A stretch of 64,000 nt of DNA from Chara braunii. Its lineage: Eukaryota; Plantae; Charophyceae. How positions within the stretch are numbered: the first letter of the stretch is position 1; the number at the start of each line of letters is the position of its first letter. A program made the position numbers and the translations under genes. The DNA is taken from assembly GCA_003427395.1 (NCBI GenBank), contig BFEA01000043.1:929168-993167 (forward strand), given 5' to 3'. Below the pieces are notes generated by a model, which saw nothing but the letters and a program-made list of their open reading frames with translations, made no database searches and was not told the origin of the DNA. Shown here piece after piece: positions 1-61,660 of this stretch.

Positions 1-1978
1 ATCCTCATCATGATCATCTTCAGGATGCTGTTCATCGTCATCAACAAAATTCAAAAAAAAAAAAACCTCATCTGCCTTTTCGCCATCATAATTTTCAGGA
101 ATTTCCGATTCTTCCACTCATATCTTAGGAATCCTATTTCCTAGTAAATTCCTTGTTTTTTTTTTTCTTTTTCTTTTCTCCACTATTATTTTCTGATTCC
201 CCTTTGGACGACTCATGAACTATTTGTGCGCGGGTGGGGGGTTGGGGCTTTAAGGAGGATAGCTTTACTCTACAGGGGCTTCACAAGGTGGGGGGTGAAA
301 TGCCCTGGAGGGAGTGGGGGCAGATTGTTGGGGGATGCCCTATTCCGGGGCTGGGAGAGATGTATGGGTTGGCATCATATCCTGGCGGAGGCAGATAGGG
401 GTGAGGGGTTACTTTGGGTGGAATTGGATGCCTTAGTGGAAGTTGGGGGAGGAAGCAGGTATGTCCCAAGCTGGGGCCGATAAGGAGAGCTTGTGATCAG
501 GGCAGTCCTTTTCGGTGGAGGCAGCGGAGGGACAGGGGGAGAGGGAGGGGAAGGGGGGGAAATAATCCACAAAAACGTCCGGAATTCTGATTCTCCTCTT
601 AAGCGCAAACAAATTATTTCGGGTGGGGTGGTGGGTTGGTTCTGAAGGGGAGAGCTCTACTCTGCAAGAGCTTCACAAGGAGGGAGGTGATAGCCCTGAA
701 GGGAGACGGGGAAGATTTTGGGGGTTGCTCTATTCTAGGGCTGGGGGAGATGTATGGGTCGGCATCATATCCCAGCGGTGGCAGATAAGGGCAAAGGGTC
801 GGCAAAGGCATACTTTGGGTGGGAACTGGATGCCTTTGTGGGAGTAGGGAGGGGGGGGAACGGGTTTGTCCCAAGATGGGGCTGATGAGGAGTGTCCATG
901 ATCAGGGGCGGTCCTTTTTGGTGGAGGCAGCAGTGGGCCAGGGAGACGAGGGGGACAGGGGGGAATTTCTATATCCTTTGTTGGGACTTTCCCTGATTCT
1001 TTCTGGAGTCTTCAAAACAAGCACCCTTGTTATTCGTAGTAGTTTGAAGATTCTCTCGGGACTCTAAGGGTCTGCTGGTGGTTTGTACAAAGCTGCACTA
1101 GAATTAGACTGTTATATTCAGGACCCGAGGTTGTTCAATGCCAAAACGACGCTGGCCGGAGTCGGGGGGATGCCCTGTACCTTGCTGAAGGTGAGGGCAT
1201 GAGGTCTTGTAGAGATATATGGGGATGCTATGGGGGGGCATCCGACAACTGGGGGTTGCTGACAGAGGACGACACTGGCCGGAGCTGGAGTGAGTCGCGT
1301 TGCTCTGTAACCTAGCAGATAGGGGGCGTGAGGCCTGGAAGAGTTTGTCAGAGAATAAGTCAGTTTTAGTGAGCTTCGTTATGATCTGTTGCAAATCCCT
1401 TAGATACTCAAGTGTTCAAAAATTGCGGTGGATTTTAGGTGGTGTTTGCGATCATAAAAAAGGATTCGTAGTCTTCTCCTCAGAAACAAAAAAGGTTCTG
1501 GTGTTCTGTAATTCTTGGCAGCATCTGACCTTCTTCCTCATTCCGGATATAGGATTTCAAAGACAGTCGAATCTGGACTGATATCTGCAGAGTTGCTTTG
1601 TTCTGTGGCCCTGGTTTGCCGATGTCAGAACGACGCTGGTCGGAGTTGGGGTGTTGCCCTGTATCCTGCAAATGGCAGGAGTGTGAGGCCTTGTAGAGAG
1701 ATCTGGGGTTTTGCTGAGGGAGGAAGACAATCCAGTGGCGAACCAGGGGGCGCTACCTTGACAACCTATGGGTCCGGGGATAGTCTAGGGGGCGAGAACA
1801 GGTCACTTATGGTAGACGTTGGTTAGGATGGCATTGTCTCTGAGATGTAATGTCCCGGTACAGGGAGGGCTAGGAGTTGTTTTAGGATTAGGAGGCCATA
1901 ATTGCTGATATAACATAGTCTTCTATATTTTTTATCATCATCATTAGTATGATCACAGTTTACATAGAATCAGTAGAA

Positions 1979-2011
<33 letters not shown>

Positions 2012-2163
2012 GATATGAGGGACGCTGAGCCCGATTCTCACCGAATTCGTTTCGGTCACTCCGGGTAGACTGTGAGGACCCCGGCCACAATTAGTCTTAT
2101 TGGTAATATCATCCTTGGGCACTGGGCCGCTTTAAAAATATTTAAAAAAAAAAAAAAAAAAAA
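1..2163 (+). mobile_element. Long non-coding poly(A)-tailed retroposon (5' part outside window), mosaic 3' end
   Basis: 1-1480 is an inverted homolog of ~28430-29930, and 1500-2140 an inverted homolog of ~13345-14050. Carries three Alu-domain-like motifs (1154-1214, 1277-1342, 1638-1700) and a 3' hairpin/pseudoknot (2019-2084). Ends in poly(A). No credible ORF. Confidence 0.7.
230..970 (+). repeat. Two diverged G-rich direct repeats (~340 bp; 230-560 and 620-970)
   Basis: Shared blocks such as gcttcacaagg, gggctgggrgagatgtatgggtyggcatcatatcc and gtcccaag. The same pair occurs inverted at ~28970-29710. Confidence 0.8.
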
Positions 2164-2169
2164 CTTGCC

Positions 2170-2466
2170 CTGTTATTAATATCTTTGCGTTATTTGTATC
2201 TCCGCTACTCCTCACTTTGCAGAAGATTGCATTGGATAATTGAGGAGTTGAGTAGGGCAGAGTTTGATTTAGCACCCAGCGGGGTTAATCCTTCGTTACT
2301 GGGGAACCAATCAATGCCCCGAGATTTTACTATATTCGTGTTATGCAGGGAAGCTGTCTCCAGGGGAGCAGTGGCTGAGGCTCTTCCAGCCCTAATGGGA
2401 AGAGGAGTGTGGTTAAGTGTTGTAATCAAACTCATAATTGGAGCCTTGTGAAAAAAAAAAAAAAAA
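2170..2466 (+). mobile_element. Short poly(A)-tailed retroposon 3' end (family F)
   Basis: Near-identical inverted copy at 11445-11720 (gaagctgtctccaggggagcagtggctgaggctcttccagcc). Poly(A) tail. Confidence 0.75.
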
Positions 2467-2666
2467 GGACTGGTGCAGTGCTGTCTCCTGGTCAGAAGGG
2501 TTAGAGGAGCCACATTGGCGAGTGCGAAGGGAAGGAAGAAGGAGATGAATGGAGGGTTGCAAGGGTGAGGTAATTGTAGGGGATTCCTTGGACCGGGTTG
2601 TGCATATCTTTTTGCCTTATGAGGCCTTTTATTTGTTTGTTTGTTTTGTCAAAAGGCCTCCATTTT

Positions 2667-2669
<3 letters not shown>

Positions 2670-2697
<28 letters not shown>

Positions 2698-3285
2698 TTT
2701 AAGTCCAGGGTGTTGTAGAGGCCAATTACTAGGCACACCTTGGCGGAAGCGGTCAGCCGTTGTCGCTCGGAGGAGGCGAGTCCACCACCCATCCCATCCT
2801 CGTGTCAATACTCCTAGCGCATCCCCTAGCCCTACTATCCTACCTCAGTGTGACCAGCACTTAGGACCATCACCCTACCAGTATCAAGGGGAACTTGGAC
2901 CGAACAGTAGTGACAGGCACCAGGGCTAGCGACCCAGCCCTGGTTGAACCATAGTCGAGCGAGCCTCGTCGTAGGGGTGCTTTGGACGCCAGGCTCAAGC
3001 AATCACCTTTTTGCCCTTAAATTGACCAACTAGTAACTCACGCACTCTACTCTCCCACCACAGACCTAGCTGTATATTTAATGCGGGGTACTTATCATCG
3101 AGACGCCTATCGTCATCACCAGTTGGAGCCGACCAAGCCAACCAGTGACTCACACCCTCTACTCTCCCACCACAGATTCTAACTCTATATTTAAGGCGGG
3201 GTACTTATCATTGAGACGCCTATCATCATTAGCAGTTGATCGTGACCTCCACCCAGCCCTTGTGTATATGTGTGTGTGTGTATGT

Positions 3286-3343
<58 letters not shown>

Positions 3344-3965
3344 CCTCTATGTTGACCAGCCAGTAACTCACGCCCTCTACTCTCCCACCACAGACCTAGT
3401 TGTATATTTAATGTGGGGTAGTTATCATTGAGACGCCTATCATCATCACCAGTTAGAACCCACCAGACCAACCAGTGACTCAGGCCCTCTACTCTCCCAC
3501 CACAGACCCTAGCTGTATTTTTAAGGCGGGGTACTTATCATCGAGACGCTTATCATCATTATCAATTGATCGTAACCTCCTCCCAGCCCTATGGTTGTGT
3601 ATGTGTGTATGTACTCTGTATCATAGATGTATGCCCGTGGGCTATATCATGTATGGTTGTATGCTGTTCCCCACCATGGAGCATCGGCGAAGTGAGAACT
3701 GAGTACGAGTGAGAGGTTCTCCTATCACCTCCACTTGTACATGCATGTGTGTGTACCTTGAGCTATATATGTATATATAGTATGTGTGTATGGTATGTGA
3801 TAGACTATGTATCGCGATTGTGCTATCTGGGGTAGTATCTCATGTGTGTGTGTGTATGTGGTAGAGACAGGTCTATTTGGACAGGACCCCTCAAAGTCCT
3901 GAGCCGGACTCGAACCTGTGACCTACAGTATGAAACTGGAGGGTTCTACCACTTATACTATCGTG
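2670..3965 (-). mobile_element. Long tRNA-related retroposon (family D), minus copy with internal satellite
   Basis: The 3' end aagtccagggtgttgtagaggc is the reverse complement of the end at ~5414-5434. 2790-3000 is homologous to 5130-5350. Internal tRNA-like segment at 3885-3965. Confidence 0.6.
3033..3590. repeat. ~112-bp tandem repeat (4 units, interrupted by (TG)n); inverted copies at 4070-4365
   Basis: The unit gtractcacrccctctactctcccaccacagacctag...gagacgcctatcatcat is visible four times, with reverse-complement units at 4070-4365. Confidence 0.9.
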
Positions 3966-4202
3966 GGAAGTGGATATAATGTGTGTAATGTCTGGACTGG
4001 GGAAGATCATCAGAGCAGTCAAAACCAACAACAACCAGCAACCAATGTGAAGAGACCAACATGGCCTGAGTCACTGGTTGGTCTTGTGGGTTCTAACTGG
4101 TGATGATGATAGGCGTCTCGATGATAACTACCTCGCATTAAATATACAGCTAGGTTTGTGGTGGGAGGGTAGAGGGCGTGAGTTATTGGTTGGTCAACAT
4201 AG

Positions 4203-4245
<43 letters not shown>

Positions 4246-4371
4246 AAGGGTTGGGTGGAGGTCACGATCAACTGATAATGATGATAGGCGTCTCAATGAT
4301 AAGTACCCTGCCTTAAATATACAGCTAGGGTCTGTGGTGGGAGAGTAGAGGGCGTGAGTCACTCGTTGGCT

Positions 4372-5453
4372 TGGTGCGCATGGAGAATGGTGCACGGCTG
4401 GACATACACTATCCTCTGACCACTACATGGTTATAATTACAAACCCTACCTGTATTGGTCAGGGGAGCAAGTCCCGGGTGTTGTATGCGGGTTCTGGGTT
4501 CCGCAGGGCTTGCTCGGGGAGTTGGTCTTGGTCGTTCGATTCTCCTCCCCGGTCTGATATACCACACACATGTGCTATTTTCGATTGTTGCTCATACGAT
4601 TGAGTCTTCCTGTTACATCTCACAGGTCACGGGTTCGAGCTTGGTCACAGACTTTGGGGGGGTCTGTCCAGTCTGGCCCGTTATACATGGTATTCTCAAC
4701 ACACATATAGTGTTGATATATGGTCTTCGAGCCCATATATGATTCATACTGCCTTCGAGTATACAACTGGCTTCTGGATATATAGACATACATCGTAAAT
4801 AGCCTACATCCATGGCTTTCTGAGCACATACATATGGCCTAAGGGCTTACATGCATCTACAGTTGACTGGGGGAGGGGTAGAATAGACTTAGACTCTAGG
4901 GTATAGAATACGGTAGTTACCCCAGCAGGTTTGAGTTCCACCTAGCCAAGATAGGGGCAAGCTAGGGAAGGATGGTAGGACTGTCAGTCTGAATTCCGCC
5001 TGGCCTTGGGTAAGCTAGGGGAAGGACAGTAGGTTGTTTGTCTGGGGTACTGACTGCTAGTTAGTTGTCCCCGAAAATAAAACCCAGGGGTCTATGATCT
5101 CTACAATAAGGATACGAGGTTGGTAGAATATAGTGGTGCCTAGCGTCCGAAGTTCCCGTACAGCGAGGCCTGTCTGATTTCGCTTCCACTGGGGCTGGGG
5201 TAATAGCTAGCCTTGGTGCCTATCACTACTGTCTGGTCCAAGTCATCCACCTAGCGGTTGGGTGATGGTCCCGAGTGGGTTACACTGAGGTAAGATAGTT
5301 GGGTTAGGGGGTACGCTGGGAGTATTGATGAGTGGTAGGGTGGGAGGTGACCTCGTATCTTAGGACTGTGAAGGCTCATCGCTCCCGGTGATCCCTGTGT
5401 GCCTGATAATTAGCCTCTACAACATCCTGGACTTGAAAAAAAAAAAAAAAAAA
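4372..5453 (+). mobile_element. Long tRNA-related retroposon (family D), plus copy
   Basis: Homologous to 41530-41900 and 42880-43350. Internal B-box-like ggttcgagc at ~4632. Ends cctctacaacatcctggacttg followed by poly(A). Confidence 0.7.
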
Positions 5454-5454
5454 G

Positions 5455-5700
5455 CATGGACTGACCCCCTGGGTGGCGCGCAGGCAGTGTCCATACAACA
5501 CCCATGGACTGACCCCCTGGGTGGTGCACAGGCAATGTCTATAATAGTACCATGCGTCAGCCCAGGGGAGTGTGTGTCCAGCCGTGCATCATTCTAACGC
5601 CCTGCCGGTGTCCATGCCCAAGGCTGCGGAGTTTTGAACCCACAACCTCATACCACAATGCGCATTTCCAACCGGTGCTCTAACCAATGAGAGATAACTC
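5455..5700 (-). mobile_element. tRNA-derived SINE head (family S1/D)
   Basis: Reverse complement of the 41420-41580 head. A-box-like ctcattggttagagc and B-box ggttcaaaactcc. Confidence 0.75.
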
Positions 5701-6074
5701 AAAAACCAACAATGTAGCAGAGATTTAATATGAAGCGTAACCACATTGCTGCAGAATGATAGCATCATGCTTCAGACTTTCTTCTCTACGCAACTCAGTC
5801 TGAATAACCGGGCATCAGCCGGCCAATAAATACTACTTCCGATGTCCAAAAAGTCACTCATAGTCCCCCGGGCCCAGCAGAACTGGTCCCTGGACCTGAA
5901 AAAACGTTAAACACTCTGAAACCCACGTACCAATGCGCCTGGTAGGTGAGTACGAAGTGCAGATTCAAAAAACTCAAATAAATAAATTTAGAAATTAAAA
6001 ATAAAGATGAGAAATAATAATTATTGTCCACGTCCCTAGGACGCTCACTCATGTTTGATTGCGACAATCTGTGC

Positions 6075-6530
6075 AGCCGCAGGTAATCGCCTCATGGTCC
6101 AGTGAAATGCCCAGCTGGACTCGCATAGATCGCCAAGTACCGAGTGACAAATAGATGCCCGCCGATACTTGCTTTCGTCGTACCCGGTGGTAGTTACGAT
6201 TTGCCAAGAAGCAAAGAATTGCATCAGTAGATCGCCCAGCAGGTTTTTTTTCGCCAAGTCCCTGGTGGCACAGTCTCCGCCACAGAGACCTGCCCCTGGT
6301 CGATTCGCAGGCCGTTATCGCCTCATGGTCCAGTGACCAGCTGGACTCGCGTAGACAGCCAAGTACCGAGTNACAAATAGATGCCCGCCGATACTTGATT
6401 TCGTCGTACCCAGTGGTGTGTAGATCGCCCAGCAGGTCTTACCGCCAAGTCCCTGGTGGTACAGCCCATCTGAATCCCTCACAGAGACCTTCTGCATCTG
6501 GCGTGCCCCTGGTCGATTCGCAGGCCGTTA
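6075..6530. repeat. Imperfect ~230-bp direct repeat at PLE 3' end
   Basis: atcgcctcatggtccagtga...aaatagatgcccgccgatacttg...tagatcgcccagcagg...gcccctggtcgattcgcaggccgtta occurs twice. Confidence 0.85.
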
Positions 6531-6546
6531 AGAAGGGTCTACAACA

Positions 6547-7908
6547 CTACCTTTGCCAATCGCGGTAGCATTCACGTAGCCGATAGACCATCTCAGTTAA
6601 AACCCTCCCTCCCATCCTTTCGGAATTTTTTTTGAACAAAGTGAGAACCTGTTCAGATGGAAAACCCACTCCTTTAAGTTCTCGGTGTAGAGTCATCAAT
6701 GCAAGTGGAAGTAGTGCCTCTTTATTTGTATTGCTTAAGATTCGATGCAATGTTCCAGTTATACTTGCAAACTTGCGTTCTTTCGGACCGAAAGAGTCGT
6801 ACCATTTTGTGATCATGAATTTCGGTTCACTTGGGTCCGTCCAAACACTATCCAAGTTCTTAAATTTGTGTGTTGTGACGACCTCAGCGGGTTTCTCTAG
6901 CATAATAATGCGCATCTTCAGAAAGTCAGCCACATTTTAGTTCCCATCGGTTCGTTCTAGTCTTAATTCATTATGGTAGCAGTTTGTGATTCTATCCATT
7001 ACCCTGATGGTTCGAATTTTGTCTTCTTCATTTCCAACCTTTCGACAACCCAAGTAGTAACAGGTCGTCAACGTACCTTTGCCCAAACAGTCGTTTCCTA
7101 TCTGTTACTAAGGATTCGAGAAACCTGTTTTCGGGATACATACATACGAGTGACGCAAGGGGTGGGCTAGCTTGCCCACCCATCGGAATACCTCTGTTTT
7201 GCTTCAGAATGTCAACCAACGGACTTAAAATAGAAGTTGTCCAGCAAAAATGAGGTAAGCTTTTCTAAGTCGCCCAGTCTTATGGACTTCCATCCTTTTT
7301 CCCCAGCCGATTTACCGACCAGAGCTCCCTTTCCCTGCGTTTTAACTCGAGCCCAGTGCTTCCCCCGATTCCTGCACTTCCATGGATTGATGCCCTTCCT
7401 TCATCGTGCGAAATTTTTGAGAACATTTCTTTCACATCATATGTTCGTGCCTGGATATCCAACTTTTCTTTTTCGACTTTGCATTTACCACTTGCAATTT
7501 TTGTTTTAAGTCACGTCCTGAAGCCAAATTAAAATGGTCGTGCTTTTCTTTCCTAATCATGCAATTGAGCACCTTCACCAGGTTGTTGGCTGCAAACCTG
7601 GTAGGATTCAGAAAGGATGGACAAATAGGCCGCTTTTTGTCCAGATCCTTTTTTTTACTCATGGTAAATGCATTTTGGATTCTCCCTTTGTTATCCCATC
7701 TCCCGACACGATCCAATTTTTTTCCTTTGAAGTCCCTTCTCATTGTGCATAATATTTCATCCTCAGTCTTTGATATCTTCTCAAAATCAGGATTATCGTT
7801 AAAGGTCTTCTTCATCCCAGAAACGTATAGTTTGGGGCATTCAATCAATGTTGCACCTGGATTGCGGTCTAGGGGAGAAAGGGTCAGGCCTTTGAAAGCC
7901 TCCTTCAC
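6547..7908 (-). pseudogene. Penelope-like reverse transcriptase (frameshifted)
   Basis: QNRGIPMGGQASPPLA and RYVDDLLL motifs (7028-7219), PLDRN motif and KRPICP (7432-7908), thumb-like 6547-6933. Split by frameshifts. Confidence 0.85.
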
Positions 7909-8861
7909 TCCTAGTACGTATTAACAGGATACGGTATCGTTTGGGAGACCCGATGGTCCAATCCTTCTCAATTTCAGAGGAGAAATCTTAAAAACATCAG
8001 TGATTCCGGCTTTCCTGAGATTTTTAAGAGTTATACGACAAGCATCATTCACAACATGCAAGTTCATTATCCTCCCTGGATATGGGACATTTCTGGAGTT
8101 GTAGAGAAAGGGCTTAATCCCCTCAAGCTCGTTCAGCCGAACCCGTACATGCCCATCAATTTTGGGTAGTTCAAACAAGTGACATGCACAACTCTGAACA
8201 TCTTCAGACGCAGTCAGTTTGTGGTTATGCAGCAGATCAGCGACAGTCTCAATTTTCGTAAAGACCACACGCAGCTTCTTCTGCATCAAGTCAGCAAACT
8301 CAAGAGGTTTAATCCTATCCCCCAACCATTCACACTCTTCAGTACGCACACAGCTCTTGTCAATTGTTGGGCAAAAGGACATTTTTACAACAATCCTTTG
8401 CCTGGGGTTGAATCCTATCTTCTTCTTCAATTCAGTCGAGATCAATGATCGAATAATTTGTCTACCTCGTTTAGTATTTACTGATTTAATCCTTTAAGGA
8501 GCCTAAGCAGACCGGCGGTGTCCTTTTTTAGAATGTCCCGCCATTTCCACGGGGTCCTCAAGAGTGAAATCAGTTCAGGCTTCCGACGGTCAGTCTCCGA
8601 TTCCGTTCGCACCAAACATGTAATTTCCCACTCCCCACCATTTTCGAGAGCACATTTTAGGTCCTTAAGTACTGCCCGTCCTTGATCGTTTACTAATTTC
8701 GTGTCCCCATATACGAGCCTTACGAGTCTCCATGGCGTAATCCATTTATTGCCACCGTGGCTAGTAATGTGAACAGGCCGGTTTGTACCTTTAGAGGCCT
8801 TCAATACCTTCAGGAGGTTCGTACATCGAGGGTGAGAGTTAGATGAAAACAATATAGGCTT

Positions 8862-9263
8862 TCACGCATCAATTTCCGTGGGAGTTACTGTTCTTCCATT
8901 CTTTCGTACTTTCCTTGCTTTCCTTCTCCGTTTACATCTGCGAGTGTTCAAGCCTGGGTTGGTCTCACAAATAATCTGGTTTTCCATGCATGGTAGGTTA
9001 TCTTTCAATCCCAACCACAATGGAATAGTGCAATATGTTTCCGGTCTCATCTTATGCATCAATTTATGTACCTTATATATAGGCCTATCTAGAGAGGAAC
9101 GAACATGCTCTCGCCATCTCTCAGAAAGGCAACGCCCAGTCTGTCCGACATATGTCGGTTTGCAAAACGGAGAAATCAGTACATAAACGCAAGAAGAAAC
9201 CCTCCCGGACACAAGTAAATCGACATCTAGTCCCCCCCCGTACTTAGTGAAGTTAAACCCCAT
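8862..9263 (-). pseudogene. GIY-YIG endonuclease domain of PLE
   Basis: CVYVLISPFCKPTYVGQTGRCLSERWREH ... E ... PGLN matches the GIY-YIG signature (VY...YVGQT...R..EH...E...N). Confidence 0.85.
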
Positions 9264-9810
9264 CGGTTATATCCCAGAAAACACGAAAGCAGTGTCCCAA
9301 TTCGAAAAACAGACTCAAGTGAAGCCCTGTCAGCTCCATCGTACTCAGGAATGGCGGTGCAAATACGCCGTAGAGTGTGAAGCAAACTTCTTTTTGTCGG
9401 GACTGCTTTCCCAACACATCATCATCGGATCGCGCATCATTCTCCTCTGGCTCTTCATGAGTAGACTCGATCTCAGTATCGGCATCGCAGGCATCACCGT
9501 CTTCATCCCCGTTTATCAGCCGGGTGAATTCCTCAGTCTCTTGTTTGGCCAGTTCCCAAGCTCCCTTGTCTTTCCTTGCCCACTTGATATCTCGTTTCTG
9601 ACACAGACTCTTCACATTTTTTCCATTCATGTTGTAGCGGACCTTGGGTTGGCCTGTGAGACCAGCCCCTTGGCCTGTTCTCACAGGCCTGTGTTATATT
9701 CGGGGTAGGCCAGTCCAGGCCGGTACCTCTGTCGGTACCAGCCAGTCCAGTCCAGTCCCGTCAGTCCGCTGGGGTATACCCCAGCCATTGTCTGTTTTCA
9801 GGCTCATTCC

Positions 9811-11172
9811 TCACTTNCACATTTTGGAGTACGTGCGTTNGAGTCTTGCGTGNGGAGCTGCGTTGTGCCATCTTGCTCCCCCTTCTTCCTCCATCTCCAT
9901 CTCTGTCACTAGCGGAGCACCACACCTGGTGGGTCCGCTACANNNGTNNNNGNNNNGGNNNNGNNNNNNCNNCNNNNNNNCANNNNNCNCAGNNNNNNNN
10001 NNCNNNNNNNCNNNNNNGNNGNNTNNNNNNNNNTNNNNNNNNNNNNNNNNNNCNNNNNNNNNNNNNNNANNNNNNNNNNNNNTNNNANNNNNTNCNNNNN
10101 CNGNNNNNNNNNNCNNNNCNNNGNNNGNNNNACNNGNGNNNGNGNCNNNTGNNCNNNCNGCNNNNNNCNNNNNNNCNNCNNNNNNNNTANNANCNANNTC
10201 CNGNANNNNNNTNNNNNNNNNNNNNNNTNNNNNNNNANNCNNNNNNANNNNNGNGNNTNCNTNNNNNGCNNNNTNNNNNNNNCNNNNNANTNNNNCNNTN
10301 NNNNNNNNNCNNNNNNNANNNNNGTNGNANNNNNNNNNNNNNNNNNNTTNNCNNNNCTNNNNCCCNNCANNNNNCNNNNNNNANCNNNNNNNNNNNNNTT
10401 NNNCNNNCNNNNNATTCAATCCTACGATCCTTTTACGCTTCTCGCTACTCCCTTCAGCCTTGCTATTGGGCTCGAGCTCCGCCATCATCTGTATCATCCG
10501 CTCCCTCTCCATGTCTGCAACCTTCGCTTTGCGATCAACGGAATCTAGTTTATCCGAGATCTTCTTCAGTTCAGCGCCAAAATTCTTCGTAAGCCACGTC
10601 TTCATACCTTGTTCTCCATCTTCAGTATTCTTGCTTCCTTTCTTCTTGGCGGCTGCAACAGCGGCGTTCTTACTGCTTTCTCCCGAATCAGTTACGGAAA
10701 CAGGTTCTTTCTTGGTCTCTTCGGCATCGCGAGACTTCCAGCGTTCGATGAGCTCGAGATGCTCACGAGTGAACCAAGCACGATTCCCCGGTCCGGGGAA
10801 CGCATTCGCTGCAGGGTCTCGACGCTGTGGAGGACCATAGCTCTGAGGGTAGTTCCAGTTCGGCGGAGGCTGTTGAACTGGATACGGAAAACCCAATGGT
10901 GGAGCAGTAGCTGGTACCGCCGGAGGCGGAGCCGGTTGCACTGCCGTGCTGGCGACGGCAGGTGGAAGCGCAGGAGCCGGTGGAATCCATCCATACGGAT
11001 ATGGATATCCCAATGGTGGAGCGGTAGCTGGGACAGTCGGTGATGGAGTCGGTTGTACTGCAGCGCTGGCAGGTGGCGTGGCTTGGAAATCCATCCAATA
11101 CCTGTTGCAACCTGACCACCTTCCTCTACCGCGTCCTCGCCCACTACCTCGACTAGGTCCCCTCGCGTGCAT
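9811..11172 (-). CDS. Upstream ORF1/gag-like region of the PLE (Pro-rich, coiled-coil), partly in N-gap
   Basis: Open frame with duplicated Pro-rich units and charged helical segments, on the same strand and directly upstream of GIY-YIG. About 470 bp of it is mostly N. Confidence 0.45.
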   Translation of the reverse strand: MHARGPSRGSGRGRGRGRWSGCNRYWMDFQATPPASAAVQPTPSPTVPATAPPLGYPYPYGWIPPAPALPPAVASTAVQPAPPPAVPATAPPLGFPYPVQQPPPNWNYPQSYGPPQRRDPAANAFPGPGNRAWFTREHLELIERWKSRDAEETKKEPVSVTDSGESSKNAAVAAAKKKGSKNTEDGEQGMKTWLTKNFGAELKKISDKLDSVDRKAKVADMERERMIQMMAELEPNSKAEGSSEKRKRIVGLNXXXXXXXXXXXXXXXXGXXXXXXXXXXXXXXXXXXXXXXXXXXXXXXXXXXXXXXXXXXXXXXXXXXXXXXXXXXXXXXXXXXXXXXXXXXXXXXXXXXXXXXXXXXXXXXXXXXXXXXXXXXXXXXXXXXXXXXXXXXXXXXXXXXXXXXXXXXXXCSGPTRCGAPLVTEMEMEEEGGARWHNAAXHARLXRTYSKMXK

Positions 11173-11444
11173 CCAAGCACTGCAGAGTCACTTCACCACG
11201 CTCGATGATGTCGTGCGGTCAACAGCGACTATCGCAATCGAAACCCAGTGCGAGTATCGACGAGCAGGACGGGTGACCTTGGCTATGGTAGCCTAGATTC
11301 ACCAAAGAAGTATGAATAAGAATAAGAGCAATAGTAAAAAATCCAGAAACGAAAAAATAACACATGCTCCACCTTAGTACACCGATTCAAAGAATCGAGA
11401 GTGCATACTAGGAGGTCATCGGAGCACGGACAAGGGGCCTCCAT

Positions 11445-11720
11445 TTTTTTTTATTTTTTATTTTTTTTTGAAAAGGGGCCCAGTGCCCAAGGCTCCAGTT
11501 ATGAAATTGATTACAACATTTATACACACGCCTCTTCCCATCAGGGCTGGAAGAGCCTCAGCCACTGCTCCCCTGGAGACAGCTTCCCTGTATAACACGA
11601 GTATAACATGAGCCCAGGGTATTGATTGCGTCCCCAGTGAGGAAGAATCAATTGTTGACAAGGCATGGTATGGCCACTAAGGAGGACGAGGTTCGAGTGA
11701 CGATCAGAGCTGGAGGACGC
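11445..11720 (-). mobile_element. Family F retroposon 3' end
   Basis: Inverted homolog of 2230-2450, with the T-run on the left. Confidence 0.75.
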
Positions 11721-12039
11721 AGGGGCCTCCCGACAGTCCCACCCTCTGGTACCCCCCAGACATAGGACGGTAACGAGCGAGTGGAGGCCCTGACGGTGCG
11801 GAAGACCTACACGAACTGCAAAAGGTGTCCAGCAGGGGAAGGATTGAGCAGACAAATGTCGAGCGCAGCAGGAGAGGAAGAGGGAGGAAGGGAAGGGGAA
11901 ACTAGGAGTATCAGAAGTTTTCTGGCGCCTCACACCAGGCGAAGAGGTTCTCCCCTTTCAAACGCCCCGTGCCTCTGGAAGAACCTAGAGCAACCAATGC
12001 TGACAGAAGGCACCTTTCCCCTGTGTAGCTGTCTGAATA

Positions 12040-12240
12040 CTAATCTGATGACAGAGCTTGTTTATTCGCAAAGATGTATCAAAGATGTATCATTGGGAAG
12101 CTGGACCCGGTTTCCAGCAGGTGCTGCTCCCCACCAATAGATGGAGCCTCCTGGATGGTGCTAGTGCTGCCTGCTCCTATCAGCACCGCTAGCAGCAGCC
12201 CGGGTTGTTTTTGTAAAAAAAAAAAAAAGAAAAAAAAAGA
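12040..12240 (+). mobile_element. 5'-truncated LINE/SINE 3' tail with pseudoknot module
   Basis: gggaagctggacccggtttccagcaggtgctgctccccaccaatagatggagcc (12095-12148), terminal hairpin and poly(A). Degenerate second copy at 12548-12650. Confidence 0.75.
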
Positions 12241-12704
12241 TTAACCCCGTTGTGTGCAGAATCAAGCTCTGCCCTACACTCCTCAATTATCCCTACTTCA
12301 ATCATCTGCACGGTGAGGAGGGGGGGAGATACCATTTTTAGGGCAAAGAGACTGAAGGGGCCTCCATTCTTTACAGGTGTGCCTTGCTTGCCTGGCCTTT
12401 TGGGGCAAAATATCTTGGATGGGCCTATTTGTGGAGGTGATAGGAGCAACCCCTACGAATAGGACCGGGTTGAAAATCAGATTTTTTGTAGCAGTCAGAC
12501 TTCTCCATATTCTCAGAATCTGTCAGCAAATGTGTCAGTTCTGTAAAGGGTTGCTGGACCCGGTTTCCAGCAGGTGTCCCCACCAATCAATGGAGGCATG
12601 AACCAAGCTGCTAGGGGAGAATGCTTTCACCATCACTCCTAGCAAAGTAAGTTTTTTTTTTTGTTTTTTTTTGGGGGGGGGGGGGGGGGGGGGGGGGTGT
12701 TAAT

Positions 12705-12996
12705 TAGGGCGCCGTCACAATTTCAGTTTTAAATCCACTTCAGGCATCCCTCGAATACAAACACATCCTCACCTGAGCCTAAAGCTAGGTTGAATGGATT
12801 CACCATAATTTTTCCTCGCTTTGGCACGACATTCGTGAAAAAGTGACTGAAACGAGATGGAGCAGCCCGACGGTTCTCTTACCACCCCCAGGATAGAGGG
12901 CTATCGCAAGGGCTATTCTCGCACCCAAAAAAAAAAAAAAAAAAAAAAAAGAGTGACTGAAACACATTTTCAGCCTGAAACTGTGACTGCGCTCTA
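12705..12996. mobile_element. MITE with ~22-bp TIRs, interrupted by a retro-insertion
   Basis: TIRs tagggcgccgtcacaatttcag / ctgaaactgtgactgcgctcta. Uninterrupted homolog at 35484-35649. Confidence 0.75.
12854..12951 (+). mobile_element. 98-bp 5'-truncated retro-insertion with 12-bp TSD
   Basis: TSD agtgactgaaac at 12842-12853 and 12952-12963. The insert is the end of the pseudoknot module, a terminal stem and poly(A). Confidence 0.9.
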
Positions 12997-13343
12997 GTTA
13001 AGGAAATATGGCTGGCAGTGTCTGAGAGAAAAGTGGAAGGCTTCAATGCTGTATATAACTGAAGAGATGTCTGGTTGAAAAAAAAACAAAAAAGAACAGA
13101 TGTATGGTGCCGACTTCTGTCACAACATGGTATTGCTGACGAGGCAGCCATGCGTCACATCCTTCATTGCCTTCGTCATCATTTGTGCCCGAAAGTGCGT
13201 TGACTTATGTACTCTTAGCACCGGGTCCAGCACCACTAGCACTGGAGGGGTCGTTTTTGTTTACGAAAAACCCTATCAGTCGCAGGCTAGACAGTTCAAC
13301 CATTTTGCACCTTTTTTGGTGTGTGTGACTTAGATTTGAACAC

Positions 13344-14060
13344 TTTTTTTTTTTTTTTTTTTTTAACAACGGGCCCAATGCCCAAGGCTGATATTACCAA
13401 TATGAAGATTGAAGCCGGGGTCCTCATAGTCTACCCGGAGTGACCAAACCGAACTTGCTGAGAACCGGGCTCAGCGTCCCTGATTTTTTGATAATGATGA
13501 TGATGATGATGATGACGATGATGATGATGATGAATTTTTGCTGATTCTATGTAAAATGTGAGATAATCATACTAATGATGATGATGCCAATGATGATGAT
13601 GCCCAGTATGTAAAATATGTAGAAGATTATGCTGTATCAGCAATTCTGGCCTCCTAATCCTAGAACAACTCCTAGCCCTCCCTGTACCAGGACATTACAT
13701 CTCAGAGACAATGCCATCCTAACCAACATCAACCATAGCTGACCTGTTCTCGCCTCCTAGACTATGCCCGGACCCATAGGTTGTCAAGGCAGCCCCCCCC
13801 AGTTCGCCACTGGATTGCCTTCCTCCCTCAGCAAAACCCCATATCTCTCTACAAGGCCTCCCACTCCTGCCATTCGCAGGTTACAGGGCAACGCCCCAGC
13901 TCCGGCCAGCGTCGTTCTGGCATCGGCAAACCAAGGGCACAGAACAAAGTAACTCTGCAGATATCAGTCCAGATTCGACCATCTCTGAAACCCTATATCC
14001 CGAATGAGGAAGAAGGCCAGATGCTGCCAAGAACTACAGAACACGAGCAAGGTTGATATA
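13344..14060 (-). mobile_element. Non-coding retroposon, inverted homolog of 1500-2140
   Basis: Continuous similarity to the reverse complement of 1500-2140. Poly(T) at left, pseudoknot module at 13415-13480, Alu-like motif at 13845-13907. Confidence 0.85.
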
Positions 14061-14587
14061 AGATGATTGAAAACTATGGAATTTTTTTATTTTTATTTTT
14101 TTCAATCAGCAAAACCTGGCCTCACACTCTATGCTCAACTTCTGGCTTCTCCCCTCTACCAAATGCAACACTCCAAGACAGTATCATCCCCTCCAATGCC
14201 CACCATAGCTGGCATGTTCTCATTGCTTAGATGAAACCCGACCCCTTAGGTTGCCACAGCAGGGGCTATACCCCAGCACCGGCCAGCGTCGTTCTGGCGT
14301 CGGCAAACCGAGAGCACAAAACACCAACGCTTGGTAAGACATCAGATACTACATTGTATATGAGAAGAAAACCAGATGTCACCTCGGAATGTAAGTCGGC
14401 CAGATAAGCATGACATAACCCCTTTTTTGATGATGATGACGATGATGATAATGATGATAATGATGATGATTCATGATGTGTTACTCTTGTCCTGGATCTT
14501 TAAAGACAACTGTCTGTCTCCCAGTCACAATCGTAGCGTTGTTACTCAGAAGATTGGAAAAGAGGCTCTCCTCCCTCTTACACTTCC

Positions 14588-14614
<27 letters not shown>

Positions 14615-14618
<4 letters not shown>

Positions 14619-14795
14619 AAGCCCAGGTTGTTGTAGAGGCTAGGTTCCAGCACCCTATTGGGTTGAAGAGGCACAACTCATCTCAACTTTATGATTCAGG
14701 CATACCATTCCTTTGTATCATTCATGTACTTATGGGACGCTGGACCCGGTTTCCAGCAGGTGTTGCTCCCCACCAATAGATGGAGCCTTTACGAT

Positions 14796-14841
<46 letters not shown>

Positions 14842-15890
14842 TACACAGCGGTCGCTGCATCAGCCAGCCATTGGTTGTCCTGACAGTTGTTCCATTTGTA
14901 AGATGGCCTCCAAACCGATCCTCTCATCAATTCTCCCAGCGCACCCCCAATTCCTACTATCCTACCTCAGTGTTAATCACCTCGGAATATCACCTCATTA
15001 TCTCAGAAGCATGGCTTGGACCAAATAGCAGTTACAGGCACCAGGGCTAGGTATGCTCAACAGGACAAGCCCGGACCGACCCAGATTACCCAAGGCTTAG
15101 CCGGAACACGGACAAGCCTGGAGCGGCTATTAGCCTCCTCTTCCCAGCCCTAGTTGAAGCACAGACGAGCAAGCCTTGTCACCTGGGAACTTCGGATGCC
15201 AGGCACAAGCAGTATGATCCTATCAGCCCCACAATTACTACCCAGATTCCTACCGAGGCACCAGAGTTAGGCAGACTCAACGGACAAGCCCTGACTGACC
15301 CAGCTTGCCCAAGGCTAGGCCGATCATGGACAAGCCCAGAGTGGCTATTAACCTCCTCTTCCCAGCCCTAGTTGAAGCACAGACGAGCGAGCCTTGTCAC
15401 CCGGGAACTTCGGAGGCCAGGCACAAGCAGTATGATCCTATCAGCCCCACAATTACTACCCAGATTCCTACTGAGGCACCGGAGTTAGGCAGACTCAACG
15501 GACAAGCCACAACTGACCCAGCTTGTCCAAGGCTAGGCGGATCACGGACAAGCCCAGAGCGGGTGTTAACCCCCTACCCAACAGTAGTTGCTGACCCCTA
15601 TCTGAAAGCCCCCCAAGCCCAGATTGAGTCTATGACACCCCTAGTAAGGACTGGATACTCCCCCCTGACACTGTATGTATGCCCATAGGCTGTATTCGTA
15701 GACTTTATATGTTGTGCATTGTTGTCTATAGAAATTATCCTGTTCTGTGTAATATTTGAACCCACGTTCATCATTGTATAACAGTCATCCTCAACCACAT
15801 ATACTGTAGTTCCTCCCCGCCCCCCCCCAAATGGTACCAATGTACGATATGCCAGACTGGGGGGATCATCAGAACAATCTATGGCCAACA
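14615..15890 (-). mobile_element. Family D minus copy with nested plus-strand tail (14720-14839) and internal tandem duplication
   Basis: Family D end gcccaggttgttgtagaggc at ~14620. 14900-15050 is homologous to 2790-2930. Nested pseudoknot module (14734-14787) plus poly(A). Confidence 0.6.
15063..15560. repeat. ~219-bp tandem duplication (~2.3 units)
   Basis: cctcctcttcccagccctagttgaagcacagacgag...gttaggcagactcaacggacaagcc is repeated with a period of ~219 bp. Confidence 0.9.
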
Positions 15891-17547: not shown

Positions 17548-20500
17548 ATGCAAAGAAGGAGAGAAATTCAAGAGTTCCTTCTTCCAATAAACAAAGCTCT
17601 TACTGATCTTCAAAAAGACAATCTAGAAATCCCAATACCTAAAGATGAAATATGGACAGCTTTGATGATGATGGAAGAAGAGAAGACACCAGGCCTAGAT
17701 GGACTGCCCAAGGAATTCTGGGAAGTTATGCGGGATTTTATCCACCAAGATCTTATGGACTTCTACCAAGAGGTATGGTCCTCTGGAAGGATGGGAGAGA
17801 TAGTGGGTCAGGGGGTGCTAACACTACTGTACAAAAAATGAGATGCAACGAATATTCGTAATTATAGACCAATCAACCTCCTCACAGTCATTTACAAGCT
17901 GCTAACAAAAGCTCTATCAAACAGATTACTGAAAGTAATAGCAGATATCATTCATCCCACTCAAACAGGCTTCATATCTGGTAGGAATATTCAAGACAAT
18001 ATCCTGCTGGTTAATGAAATGATCAAAAATTCAAGACAATCGAAACAAAATGCGGCTCTTGTATTCATAGATTTTGAAAAGGCATACGACCATGTCGATT
18101 GGGTCTTTTTAGACATGTGTTTGGAAAATTTTAATTTTGGGTCTTCTTTCAAAAGATGGATACAAATCCTACACTCAGAGGCAACAACAAAAGTTATGAT
18201 AAATGGTAATTTAGCTCCTCCAATTCCGTTAGAACGATCAGTACGACAAGGTGATCCGATAGCACCCTTCCTCTTCGTCATTATGATGGAAGCACTTGCG
18301 GCAAATCTAAGACATAACAAGGATATCAAACGTATTAAGGTTGCATCTATCCCGGAAGAGGTCATCCCTGTGTGCTCACTATTTGCGGATGATCTCTCAC
18401 TATTAACAGATGTCTCAGAGGACAACATGAGGGCTATTAAGAGAATGATGGATAAGTTTTGTTCTCTCTCAGATATGAAAATTAACTGGGGTTCCAAAAC
18501 CCAAGGATGGTGGATTCATCACCAAGGGGTGAGACCACCAAAGGAACCTAGAGTTCATTGGATTCCATCTTCCTCACCAATCAGAGTCCTAGGGATTACC
18601 TTATCAGCAGAAGGAAAACCTGAAATAAACAATGAGTAGATCTCTAAACCAGCCCTAGCGAAAATGGAAATATGGAAAGATAAACACACATTATTAATTG
18701 GAAGGACGCTAGTGATTAACAATGTAATTCTAGTGTCCCTATGGTACAAATCAGTTTTATGGCCCTTAGATAAGTTGAATCTCCAATCACTACAAAGACA
18801 GATTACAGCATACTTATGGAGAGGGAATCATGAATGCAAAAATGTAATCAGCAGAGTAGTCTGGCAAACACGGATCCAACCCAAAACAAAAGGGGGACTA
18901 GGTATCCTGGATCCTCACACGCAGGCTCAGGCCTTATCCATCCAATGGATCAAGAGACTGCTCTTCAATCCACAAGTTCCTTGACAGGCTCTAGCATGGG
19001 AACAAATAGCGAGGCTGGCACCAGAAGAACCAGCAGACACTGACCCAATGATGTGGTTAGAGANCCGGTANTGGTCGATCCCAANAGGTGTCTCTCAGAC
19101 AANAAATCAGGAAGTAGAATCANACAGACAAGCAGNAANGGCAGATATAAAAAANGATCCATTCTGGCCTGACCTCCTTAGGACGTGGCGCAGACTACCT
19201 CTACCTGACAAATGCCCCCCGAAGAGGTGGGAAGAGGTCTGTCAACAATCACTTTTCAATAATAGACTAATTACAGATTCACAAGGATGTATGTTACATT
19301 GCATGGACTCTCCCTGGAGGGGATGGGTAAAAAAAGGGGTTTAAATGATATAGGATATATGGAATAAAGAAACAAAAGATTGGTACACTTTACCCCAAAT
19401 ATATCCCAAACTTCATTATTGCAGACACTCAGAGCAAGCATTGAATACCATCATTGATCTAATTCCTTTAGATTGGGTAAGAATTCTAAGAAAATGACCA
19501 AACCTCAAAGAAGGAGATTGGGTGGGCTTCAGGGATGAAAAACAACACATTGGGAATGTGGTTATGCTGGGAGAAGATGCAACAGTTCTAGTCTCCATGG
19601 TTTTTATGGACAGTCAAAATATCATCTACACAGGGAAGACCCAAGAAACCAAATGGTACCAGATGGATCAGGTGTTCAAAATAAGAGTTTTGAAAAATAA
19701 AAGTAATTGGTTGGCCTTTAGGCCAACTCAGTCAATCGACAACTTGGCCTTGGATCCAACGCAATGGAAATGGACCTCAAAAGGAGGAAAATGTACCTGG
19801 ACACGTGCAATCCACACCCTAACAGTCAAATCCACATATAGAATGTTGAGACCGTCCCTAAATATAAAAGATAAAGTGGAAGCTAGATGGATGAGACAGC
19901 TGAATATCAGCAAAGACTCTGTACGCTCTATCAAATGGTTTAAGACCATTAGAATCAAACTTGCTAAGGTAGTCTCCCTACAATGGCAGATATATCACCA
20001 CTGTCTCCCTACTAATGATTGGATTATAGAGAGAACTACTCTTGAACAAAGGGGGATAGCACTACCATGGTGCAAATTTTGCACATCAACTTTCCCATCA
20101 AGAACAATCCCAGAAACCATAGAACACATTTTCCTTCAATGTCCAAGTGCAGTATGGCTATGGAGGTGGTGGGACAGAATCTGGAGCCAACTCACAACTT
20201 CAAACCCTTGGCCATGGGATTGGAAAGCCCTTCTATGTGAAACATGGGACCCACCTCTTCATGACGAATTCTCCCAAAATCTATTTAAGGTAGGAAGGAG
20301 AGTCATTTTGTGGGCCCTGTGGCACAGACGTTGCACCAATGAAATGGAAGGTGAGGCTTGAGGGCCCTGAATTCACGGACTCGATAAAAAATCACATCCA
20401 AACTGAGATTTCGGCCCTATGGGATAAACTTAAAGAAAAAATCCAACATTTATCGATTCAATCAGAAATTGACAGTCGCATTCAAAAATTCAGCACAGAC

Positions 20501-20700: not shown

Positions 20701-21039
20701 GGTACCTTTGAGTTGGTATGGTTTAGAGTAAGCAAGGGATTATGATCTTAGGAATGGTTAATGGTGCTTGGGGAGATGAAAAATATATGGCGCCCGTCAA
20801 CAGGAGGGTGAAGAGGTACCAACTATTGACTAGGGTCTAGTACATGGGATGTGGGACCTGGTTTTCAACATCCACCTTGAGCTGAGCAGTCATATCTTTC
20901 ATCACATTCAATAGTTCAAATGTTAAGGGACGCTGGACCCGTTTTCCAGCAGGTGCTGCTCCCCACCAATAGATGGAGCCTCCCCAACCCTGCTAGTGGT
21001 GTCTGCTCCTACTAGCACCTCTAGCATTCACTTGGGCCG

Positions 21040-26859: not shown

Positions 26860-28285
26860 TTTTTTTGAAAAGCAGAGGATTAAAAAGATATCTAAAAAAG
26901 GACATGCCAGCATTGATTGCTCTGAACTGTAGAGGATTTACTGAGCAGGTTGCTGAATTCCCAGTATAGAGACTCAAATCATATATAACTGCTTACTAGG
27001 AATTCACCTGACTCTGAGTTACACCATTGGTAGCCTCTTAACCAGTTTAGGAGGTTCGGCCAGGTGGAAAGAGGGATGAGGGGGGCAGGGTCTGCGTCTA
27101 GGGGGCGACTGGAAAAGACAACTTGATCCTCCTATTTCCGTTCTCCGTCCTGACTGAGCCCACTAAGATTGTGTTGGACAGGTTCTACAGTGTCTCGGCC
27201 ATACCAGCTGAACTCAACTAAGGTGTTATTTGGTGGTGGGAACAGATCGGGGAAATCTGAGGCGGGGCGGAGGGGTATGTCACTGGAGATCTCAGTCCAT
27301 TTATGAAAAACAAACGATAGTCCTTTTGTGATGATTCCAGACGATCATTTTCGTCTAGATGCCAACCATCCCATTATATCCATGCAATCCATCCTCCTCG
27401 TTCCCCACCCAACCAGTCCATGCAGAATTATTGTAGTTTATGAATAATATATGATCTTCTTGTGAGAATTTTCATCCCTTGTACCGTCTTTTTTCACTGG
27501 GTTTTGATTGCAGTTTCAATCATTTCCTCAATTATTTCCGTTATTTCACCACTACCAATGCAGGCACCTTCAAGTGCTAGAGTGCATATGCGACGCCATA
27601 TAGCCCATAACACTTCTGCCCTCCCAATCCTAAATAAATTGGTTGTGAAGGTCGACGTTTGGGCCGACCAGTGACCAGTTAGTAAGGCTCTTCGTTCCCA
27701 TGGCCAGTCTTTGTCCGACTGTAGTTGGTTCCAAATCCAGACCCATCCACACCACGTAACGATAGAAGTTGGGCACTGTAGGAAAAAGGTGCTCTATTAT
27801 CTTGTTGGTCTTTCGAGAGGGGAAGCCCCCCACACACGCTAGACACCAAGGGAGAGCCAACCTTTTCTGTTCCAGGTGCGTATGGTCTACGAGCCATGCG
27901 TTCGTCGGTAAGCATCGGTGGGTAATTTGCCATTGAAGCGAGGCGGTCTTGGCCGGTCTGTTCTTCACTTCTTTAAACCATTTGATAGGTCTCAGGACTT
28001 CATTTGGGACTTTTAGGTGTCGAGCCCAGCGATCTACTATCCGGTCCTTCAGATTCAGTTTAGTCCTGAGCATTCGATAGGTCGCTTTAACACCCAATGT
28101 ATGGAGGTACCGATATTTGGGTCCTCCGTTCTTTGTTGGAATCTTTCATCTCAATTTTGCCACATCTATGGGGAGATCCTGGATTGGTACTTCCGGCCTA
28201 AATGCCACCCAGGATTTTTTTTCCTTTAAAACTCTCACCCTGTGAACCATTTTGACATCAATCCAAAACACTTCATCAGGCTCAA
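26860..28285 (-). mobile_element. LINE 3' fragment
   Basis: SLQWQITHRCLPTNAW, LPWCLAC and IEHLF motifs. Internal-loop motif at 26906-26949. Confidence 0.85.
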
Positions 28286-36282: not shown

Positions 36283-36760
36283 GGTTTTTTTGGTTTTTTG
36301 TTTTTGTTTTAAACTAAGCTATGTTCTTCTCTCAATTTTACATCTCACTTACCATCCTACCACTACTCCTAAGCCTATACAGGGGACCCCTGCAAGCATA
36401 GCTACCCCTGACAATTAAGGGGATGCCTGTTGCCCCCTTCCTCCTCCTAATCGGTGGTTGTCAGGGAGGAGAGTGGGGCCGCCGGTGGGGGGGGTTGGCT
36501 AATGCAAAGACCGAGCATTTTGCCAGTGGCTGAACCTCCCATCTACTTCCCCCGCCCCCATCCAGTAACAGAAGTGTGAATGGCCAGCACTCTTCCACAC
36601 ACCACACACAACCCACGCACACTCACACGCACACCAGTGATGGCCCTACCAATACCGAACGGGCGGAGCAAACCAAGAGTGCCGCAGGTGGTCAGTGGGG
36701 ATTGCACCCGCGACCTCCTGAATGCCACTTGCATGCCTAACCAACTGAGTTAGGCCACTT
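36283..36760 (-). mobile_element. SINE S2, inverted diverged copy, tail-to-tail with previous
   Basis: Reverse complement taactcagttggttaggcatgca...cattcaggagg. Shares the body and the ggggtcccctgtata 3' block. Confidence 0.85.
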
Positions 36761-46387: not shown

Positions 46388-46423
<36 letters not shown>

Positions 46424-61009: not shown

Positions 61010-61660
61010 CCTGCTGGAAATCGGGTCCAGCGTCCCTGTACAATGATGTGAATGTATCTGCTGGAAAGCGGGTCCAGTGCCTCTGTACAATGATGTGAAT
61101 GTATCTGCTGGAAATCGGGTCCAGCATCCGTATGCAGAGATGTGTTGATACCTCCAACTACCTATGTGTGCACGTCAGGCACTATATGTCAGATGATGGG
61201 AAACCATATCCATCTGATCTACAGTATCTCCAAACCAAACTGAGGCTTCGAGCCCAATCTTATGTATCAGACGGAACCCTAACCATGATGTGATGTGTAT
61301 AACACTGATTTGATGTGTGTCAGCTGGAAGACGGGTCCAGCGCTCCTATACAGTGATGTGTAGCTATGACCTACCTTCGGAACGGTCTGTATATGTACCG
61401 CAATCCATATGAATCAACATCCAACCAGTGTGTCTTCACTCATCGATTAATACATGTCCTCTGACGGGAAAACCCTATCCCCTAACCTAGCATAGGACTA
61501 TAGTAAGCGAGGCATCAAGCCCAATTCTATTGATCAATCCAGAAATCGAACCGTGACACAGATATGAAGCGAACCCCAGAGCTGCTGTACTCTATGTGAA
61601 GGAGCAGAGGCATTGATTACTTCCCAACGCAAGGGAAGGATTGACCTCCTGCTCATAAAG
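60970..61660 (-). mobile_element. Retroposon tail with tandemly amplified hairpin module
   Basis: Poly(T), then 3 x ~47-bp ctgctggaaa.cgggtccag...tgtacaatgatgtgaatgtat, a fourth copy at 61321, and the internal-loop motif at 61602-61654. Confidence 0.7.

Follow-up and report, generated by a model that had tools for sequence, protein, structure and literature searches.

Two families of poly(A)-ended retroposons in Chara braunii (assembly GCA_003427395.1), referred to here as family F and the third family, carry near their 3' ends a module in which an anchored hairpin is followed by a second helix. This plan of hairpin plus second helix is real, while the folding of the second helix with its upstream flank into an H-type pseudoknot is plausible. 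We see an even chance that these structures are 3' modules, specific to their lineages, of LINE-dependent retroposons, and that they probably serve as handles for the reverse transcriptase (RT). Both families were studied, alongside a main family with the same plan, in a 64-kb stretch of DNA (64,000 nucleotides; hereafter the window, to which all coordinates without a locus prefix refer). Poly(A)-ended retroposons abound in the window.

Layout of the modules

Family F and the third family are each present in two copies in the 64-kb window. The features of both, together with the reference copy of the main family, are given below, where the basis of the assignment follows in brackets.

2348..2352, plus strand: GGGAA anchor of family F copy 1 (sequence read)
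2353..2372, plus strand: hairpin GCUG-U-CUCC AGG GGAG-CAGU of F copy 1 (MFE fold; same in both copies)
2373..2404, plus strand: candidate H-type pseudoknot of F copy 1, with S1 = 2373-2377 with 2387-2391, S2 = 2381-2386 with 2399-2404, L1 = 2378-2380 and L3 = 2392-2398 (sequence, descriptor search)
2451..2466, plus strand: poly(A) of F copy 1 (sequence)
11532..11588, minus strand: family F copy 2, 57-nt module (sequence, copy alignment)
2019..2042, plus strand: GGGAC and hairpin GCUGAG CCCGAUU CUCACC of third-family copy 1 (sequence, reads, alignment, covariance model)
2053..2084, plus strand: candidate pseudoknot of third-family copy 1, with S1 = 2053-2057 with 2068-2072 and S2 = 2061-2065 with 2080-2084
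2144..2163, plus strand: poly(A) of third-family copy 1 (sequence)
13415..13480, minus strand: third-family copy 2, with a perfect GGGAC hairpin and a candidate pseudoknot with a U-A outer S1 pair
14734..14787, plus strand: reference copy of the main-family module, GGGAC hairpin and candidate pseudoknot (alignment, covariance model)

In family F, the anchor is followed by an 8-bp hairpin with one bulge and a 3-nt loop. The letters after it, GGCUG-AGG-CUCUUC-CAGCC-CUAAUGG-GAAGAG, could form a 5-bp stem S1 (GGCUG/CAGCC) and a 6-bp stem S2 (CUCUUC/GAAGAG) with loops L1, L2 and L3 of 3, 0 and 7 nt. The third family runs from GGGAC through the hairpin and a 10-nt spacer into CGGUC-ACU-CCGGG-UA-GACUG-UGAGGAC-CCCGG, where S1 and S2 would have 5 bp each and the loops 3, 2 and 7 nt. 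According to genome reads, the hairpin of third-family copy 1 departs from the family majority at 2034 and 2041, and with the majority letters (A>G at 2034, which turns the loop into CCCGGUU, and C>G at 2041, which repairs the stem) the third-family hairpin is perfect. The letters and pairings that a sequence-only reading of this DNA had proposed at 2348-2404(+), 11532-11588(-), 2019-2084(+) and 13415-13480(-) were found exactly as it gave them. The same holds for its loop lengths (L1 3 nt, L2 0 or 2 nt, L3 7 nt) and for its placement of the modules before the poly(A), the distance from module end to poly(A) run being 46-75 nt in both families.

Upstream of the F module, both copies carry GGGG-AACCAAUCAAUG-CCCC (2303-2330(+) and 11606-11633(-)), with a UYAAUC/YAAUCAAUG motif; no chance ORF crossing the module is on record. 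A third hairpin, predicted 3' of the F pseudoknot in copy 1 (2405-2438), is not kept in copy 2 and was rejected. F copy 2 belongs to an element at 11450-12332(-) that is interrupted by a main-type retroposon of ~585 nt (insertion 11652-12238(+)). Positions 2196-2293 of F copy 1 match 12332-12236(-) and positions 2285-2448 match 11651-11488(-), the two pieces overlapping by 9 nt of copy 1, and F elements are therefore at least 270 nt long. The junctions of this insertion show an imperfect 7-9-bp duplication (TTRATYC); main-type elements therefore insert with target-site duplications. In both third-family copies, a (CAT)n microsatellite lies directly 5' of the GGGAC hairpin (1981-2018(+) and 13481-13540(-)). 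The third-family elements contain no coding sequence in at least 650 nt upstream, and the match between 1498-1934 and 13611-14047 has 91% identity.

Shared and private parts of the tails

A short terminal box, CCUUGGGCACUGGGCC, ends F copy 2, both third-family copies and an element in further Chara DNA (L004:3321-3333), each time a few bases before the poly(A). Judged by eye, it could fold as a mini-hairpin, GGGC-ACUGG-GCCC. Its positions in the window, all read from the sequence, are:

2113..2128, plus strand: terminal box CCTTGGGCACTGGGCC of third-family copy 1
11477..11492, minus strand: terminal box of F copy 2
13372..13387, minus strand: terminal box of third-family copy 2, with one mismatch

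F copy 1 (2439-2466, plus strand) is without the box, and its last letters before the poly(A) are ...GGAGCCUUGUG. Genomic F copies mostly run on into the box, as seen in genome reads with a loose end at 2448, and copy 1 reflects either early polyadenylation or later loss. As a part common to F and the third family, the box could be an alternative candidate for the RT handle.

The main-family module is 53-54 nt long, with a hairpin of 6 bp and a 7-nt loop, and across its 19 window copies 91.5% of cells pair. The third-family GGGAC hairpin is homologous to that of the main family (z=7.7, global alignment against shuffles) and has the same loop, CCCGGUU. A covariance model built from the 19 main-family copies matched the third family in the hairpin part only (E=1.5e-8 and 7.8e-4). 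F gave no match to this model at E up to 10. The pseudoknot parts of the three families, in turn, show no mutual similarity (p 0.33-0.93, again by global alignment against shuffles).

These comparisons bear on the view, put forward in the sequence-only reading, that one architecture recurs in sequence-unrelated families with almost no shared primary sequence. The common plan was upheld, and "sequence-unrelated" is true of the pseudoknot parts alone, given that the third family shares its GGGAC hairpin with the main family and the box CCTTGGGCACTGGGCC with F. The F hairpin (8 bp, bulge, 3-nt loop) is unlike the main one (6 bp, 7-nt loop). The main module shares with F and the third family the genome, the position, the hairpin-plus-pseudoknot plan and the loop lengths, but not the pseudoknot sequences. 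From F it differs further in hairpin shape and in a covariance model that misses F. F is a well-conserved analogue of the main module whose sequence relationship to it is undetectable. Because the hairpin and the terminal box recur across families, the tails are mosaics of shared modules (hairpin, terminal box) and private ones. In some elements the GGGAC hairpin is the only module, and a poly(A) or A/U-rich end follows it immediately (46420-46443(-), 61013-61036(-), L001:49593-49623(-) and L001:22848-22888(-)), and the second module is therefore not obligatory. At 61010-61151(-), three 47-nt hairpin units stand in tandem before a poly(A).

A nearly intact L1-type LINE with endonuclease (EN), RT and zf-RVT domains is located at L004:8609-15960(+) and has three ORFs (8609-10834; 10821-13364, EN+RT; 13174-15078, zf-RVT). 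The 3' UTR of this LINE ends in GCGAAG followed by a hairpin and CCGGG-15 nt-CCCGG with the third-family loop motif; S2 and loop of the third family thus recur in this tail (L004:15779-15803). The last ~150 nt of the LINE before the poly(A) are covered by an assembly gap (L004:15805-15952). The GGGAC hairpin of the third family also occurs in main-type LINE tails, and the window LINE at 18019-20361 carries a main-type module in its 3' UTR at 20927. Since the RTs of the L004 and window LINEs are only 34% identical and their tails differ, distant LINE lineages carry different second modules. The second helix of the third family has an autonomous LINE partner, and the third family joins a main-type hairpin to the second helix of another LINE lineage. 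Of the autonomous LINE partners that the sequence-only reading had suggested looking for, one per tail type, the L004 LINE was found for S2 and loop of the third family; no LINE with an F-type module occurred in 336 kb of Chara DNA. Nor were further F copies present in 272 kb of additional Chara DNA, which had been fetched via RT-bearing gene models.

L004 also holds one degraded third-family copy and four elements, designated V-type, which have only CCGGG, a 14-15-nt loop (GA..GUGRGGNC) and CCCGG in common with the third family. Their first hairpin is different (loop UAAAGCU, UAAUGCU or UGAUGCU), with no match to the main-family covariance model at default filters, and the upstream S1 partner is absent in all four, the autonomous LINE included. 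Because these kin keep S2 and the loop and not S1, it is apparently a hairpin together with its loop sequence that is conserved beyond the third family itself, and the third-family S1 may be a lineage-specific addition or chance. All four V-type tails (L004:15746-15770(+), 27990-28030(-), 28200-28230(+) and 36440-36470(-)) have, immediately 5' of the first hairpin, an AGC or GGC that complements the GCU ending its 7-nt loop. This parallels the main-type GGG and its loop CCC, and it is invariant, hence without covariation. By eye, the V-type hairpins resemble the main hairpin (GxGAxGCUGG...CCAG).

Conservation, genome reads and transcripts

Conservation of the F module greatly exceeds that of its flanks. 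Of 163 aligned positions, 24 differ between the two F copies, 1 of them among the 57 module positions and 23 among the 106 flanking ones (binomial P=4.6e-4 for the sparing of the module), and the sole difference within the module is A/G at 2394, in L3.

Genome contigs (two DNA runs) and oligo-dT RNA reads (two RNA runs) were mapped onto 1940-2470. Read depth was highest over the pseudoknot cores. Over F it reached 33,680 in the deepest bin (2372-2389), against 1,481-5,968 in three upstream bins (2300-2353), and over the third family it was 130,271 at 2066-2083 against 2,234 at 2030-2047; within the third-family pseudoknot, the 5' half had about half the depth of the 3' half. Among the best-supported variants listed, none fell in 2348-2404 or 2053-2084, while 15 and 9 fell in the flanks. 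In the two runs, 26 and 25 contigs cease to align exactly before 2348, where the F module begins at its 5' side (loose ends at 2347). Oligo-dT RNA-seq reads lay over both the F and the third-family modules. Over F the RNA was strongly one-sided, with the first mate on the minus strand in ~68-72 reads against 4-9 (run X21, bins 2354-2389), as expected of sense transcripts if the library is of the usual reverse-stranded kind. These data show that the genome contains the modules in abundance and that they occur in poly(A)+ RNA.

Do the second helices form pseudoknots?

The pseudoknots were evaluated with an H-type descriptor (minimum stem length 4 bp, no more than one G-U pair, L1 1-4, L2 0-2 and L3 5-9 nt). 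The comparison with dinucleotide shuffles that the sequence-only reading had suggested went in favour of the complete motif, an equal or better pseudoknot arising in 0-2 (F), 21-24 (third family) and 5 (main family) of 1000 shuffles of each region, and less so for S1 taken by itself. When S2 was fixed and flank and loop were shuffled, an equally good S1 appeared at 0.02-0.04 (F), 0.06-0.07 (third family) and 0.07 (main family), values that give ~0.004 in a Fisher combination across the three families. The evidence is weaker for the third-family pseudoknot than for that of F, and S1, once S2 is granted, is weak evidence in every family.

As background, the descriptor returned ~110 motifs of third-family quality and 13 of F quality per 128 kb, i.e. 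over both strands of the window. In 336 kb of natural Chara DNA, a pseudoknot came next in 18 of the 283 sites with a GGGAN-like anchor and a hairpin (13 main-family, 2 F, 1 third-family and 2 chance-like), the 2 chance-like hits standing among ~255 unrelated anchor-plus-hairpin sites. Retroposon tails in general contained 14 pseudoknot-like motifs, about twice the 6.9 of their own shuffles. MFE z-scores were not significant for any of the module and tail folds, although nested folding cannot score pseudoknots, which makes this weak evidence for or against them. A fourth candidate pseudoknot family, made up of 43248-43281(+) and one L009 copy, reads AUGGGA(C)...GGUG...(G)UCUCAU...CACC and shows a U-G to C-G change between copies, the L009 copy lying ~66 nt upstream of a poly(A) at 18300(-). 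It is lost in a diverged copy at ~5436 and was not counted.

Covariation is absent in F, where the two modules are near-identical. Over the 32-nt pseudoknot, the third-family copies differ solely at 2053 (C/U) and 2072 (G/A), which pair with each other in S1, and this confirms the compensatory change from C-G in copy 1 to U-A in copy 2 to which the sequence-only reading had drawn attention. In the main family, 13 copies have A-U and 5 have G-C at the pair that closes the hairpin; at the outer S1 pair, 14 have G-C and 3 have C-G. These main-family data lend modest support to S1 in the plan ascribed to F and the third family. Selection on structure rather than sequence, as had been argued, agrees with the sparing of the F module (1 of the 24 differences) but not with the sequence within each family, which is nearly invariant, the third-family pair being the sole covariation among F and the third family.

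Two other pairings compete with the third-family pseudoknot. In one, GUGAGGA(C) pairs over 7 bp with the (G)UUCUCAC that belongs to the first hairpin; in the other, UGAGG pairs with a CCUCA that lies a short way downstream. The third-family L3, GUGAGGAC, can pair with 7 nt of the first hairpin loop and 3' strand, GUUCUCAC (2037-2043 with 2072-2079; 13460-13454 with 13427-13421(-)), which is a possible alternative conformer.

The explanation that competes most closely with a pseudoknot is that each module consists of two independent hairpins with sequence-conserved loops, S1 being an incidental 4-5-bp match picked by eye. The conditional chance of S1 (0.02-0.07 per family) leaves room for this, and so do the V-type kin, which, including an autonomous LINE, keep CCGGG-loop-CCCGG (GA..GUGRGGNC) without the S1 partner, as well as the lower depth over the 5' half of the third-family pseudoknot and the invariance, within each family, of the sequence itself and not of the pairing alone. 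It is harder to reconcile with three unrelated sequences that each place a complementary 4-5-mer 2-3 nt upstream of S2 (the Fisher value of ~0.004), with the compensatory S1 changes in the third and main families, and with loop lengths that obey the steric rules of H-type pseudoknots. On balance, we hold two independent hairpins to be rather unlikely as the full account. We lean slightly towards S1 really forming in F, and are inclined to doubt that it does so in the third family.

Candidate readers of the modules

We propose to regard F and the third family as non-coding retroposons with a poly(A) end, either LINE-dependent or remnants of long 3' UTRs, whose 3' regions would be assembled from exchangeable RNA modules. 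The plan would comprise a 5' anchor with hairpin, a GC-rich second helix, a short terminal box and the poly(A), and the loop of the second helix could pair with the 4-5 nt just upstream to yield a classical H-type pseudoknot (L1 3, L2 0-2, L3 7). L1-type LINE lineages differ in their version of the second module. Most likely, each module would serve the RNA that carries it, in cis, as a handle specific to the lineage, by which the ORF2 reverse transcriptase would pick or position its template for target-primed reverse transcription, that is, by "stringent" 3'-end recognition as in other LINE/SINE pairs. We infer the reverse transcriptase to be the reader of the module, and lineage-specific second modules fit co-evolution with an element-encoded reader. 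Several observations speak against a pseudoknotted handle. Between module and poly(A) there are anywhere from 6 to 80 nt, alternative pairings compete in the third family, no fold reaches a significant MFE z-score, and some elements do without the second module. The terminal box, which F copy 1 lacks, could be the true RT handle, and 336 kb of Chara DNA yielded no autonomous partner for F.

Comparable signals have been described before in the tails of other LINEs and SINEs. Structured stringent 3' stem-loops have been published for plant and green-algal L1 (Ohshima 2012, PMC3472496), where a monocot L1 lineage and an L1/SINE pair of Chlamydomonas are those for which stringent recognition was inferred, and recognition of the tail by ORF2 was shown for zebrafish LINEs (Hayashi et al. 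2014, PMC4176376). Like the stringent tails of eel UnaL2, zebrafish ZfL2 and plant and green-algal L1, the Chara modules are structured 3' UTR modules near a 3' repeat, conserved far above the rest of the element, variable between lineages and, as regards S2, loop and GGGAC hairpin of the third family, common to autonomous and non-coding elements; for F, no LINE was found in 336 kb. Stringent tails are, however, single stem-loops with conserved loops, whereas those of Chara have a hairpin, a second helix and a possible H-type pseudoknot. The Chara elements furthermore end in poly(A), like relaxed L1s. The 5' RNA pseudoknot bound by the R2 protein (bioRxiv 10.1101/2023.04.07.536001) is likewise a pseudoknotted non-LTR RNA, but it belongs to the 5' RNA of a site-specific element and not to a 3' tail, and it has no sequence or size similarity to the Chara modules.

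No published account of Chara LINE tails was found in the literature searched, and a tail made of a hairpin plus a possible pseudoknot appears to be undescribed in print. Rfam gave no matches in the window at the gathering score and, over 1950-2480, sub-threshold matches only, mostly in or beside the CAT repeat. ARAGORN detected no tRNA-like head in 1-15000, and both pseudoknot cores had 0 exact-pattern matches in JGI metagenome contigs.

The modules might instead be read by the host, in 3'-end formation or polyadenylation, in export, or in protecting poly(A) RNA from decay. The variable distance to the poly(A) (6-80 nt) and the abundance of the modules in oligo-dT RNA would suit such a role. 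A precedent is the ENE triple helix, which like the Chara modules is a structured RNA near the poly(A) of a mobile element and which, by clamping the poly(A), raises plant retrotransposon mobilisation (PMC12501189). An ENE requires a U-rich internal loop that clamps the poly(A) (PMC12501189), and reading of 2019-2143 and 2348-2450 revealed no such loop in either tail, so that an ENE was rejected. The versions of the module also vary by LINE lineage, which is a better fit to an element-encoded reader than to one host factor, and F copy 1 is polyadenylated elsewhere with the same module. Taken together, we regard a host reader as improbable. Highly improbable is a lack of any function, with conservation left by recent bursts from a few master copies and pairings due to chance: neutral decay of inserted copies, only two alignable copies per family and a structured background that eases chance finds (the 14 against 6.9 motifs of tails and shuffles) would allow it, but not the 23/106 flank against 1/57 module differences of the F copies, the contig alignments that break at the module edge, or the recurrence of the third-family second helix in a LINE that shares just 34% RT identity with the main-type LINE.

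Implications

Carried further, the reading of the modules as RT handles leads to a broader proposal. Distant L1-type lineages of Chara would each have evolved their own hairpin-plus-pseudoknot handle on a common plan, resulting in orthogonal RT-RNA partnerships. Modules would be swapped by recombination, for example in the third family, and in the streptophyte lineage a stringent L1 system with poly(A) ends would use pseudoknots as its units of recognition. We consider this proposal unlikely as it stands. If the hairpins alone are real, the modules are an ordinary addition to the known tail signals of LINEs and SINEs. If the pseudoknots are real and read by the RT, Chara would offer a natural series of handle variants on one plan. 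Such a series would bear on template choice by a poly(A)-ended L1-type enzyme and on how LINE lineages and their parasites stay apart or swap partners, and it would touch Ohshima's proposal of a stringent-type ancestral L1 in green plants.
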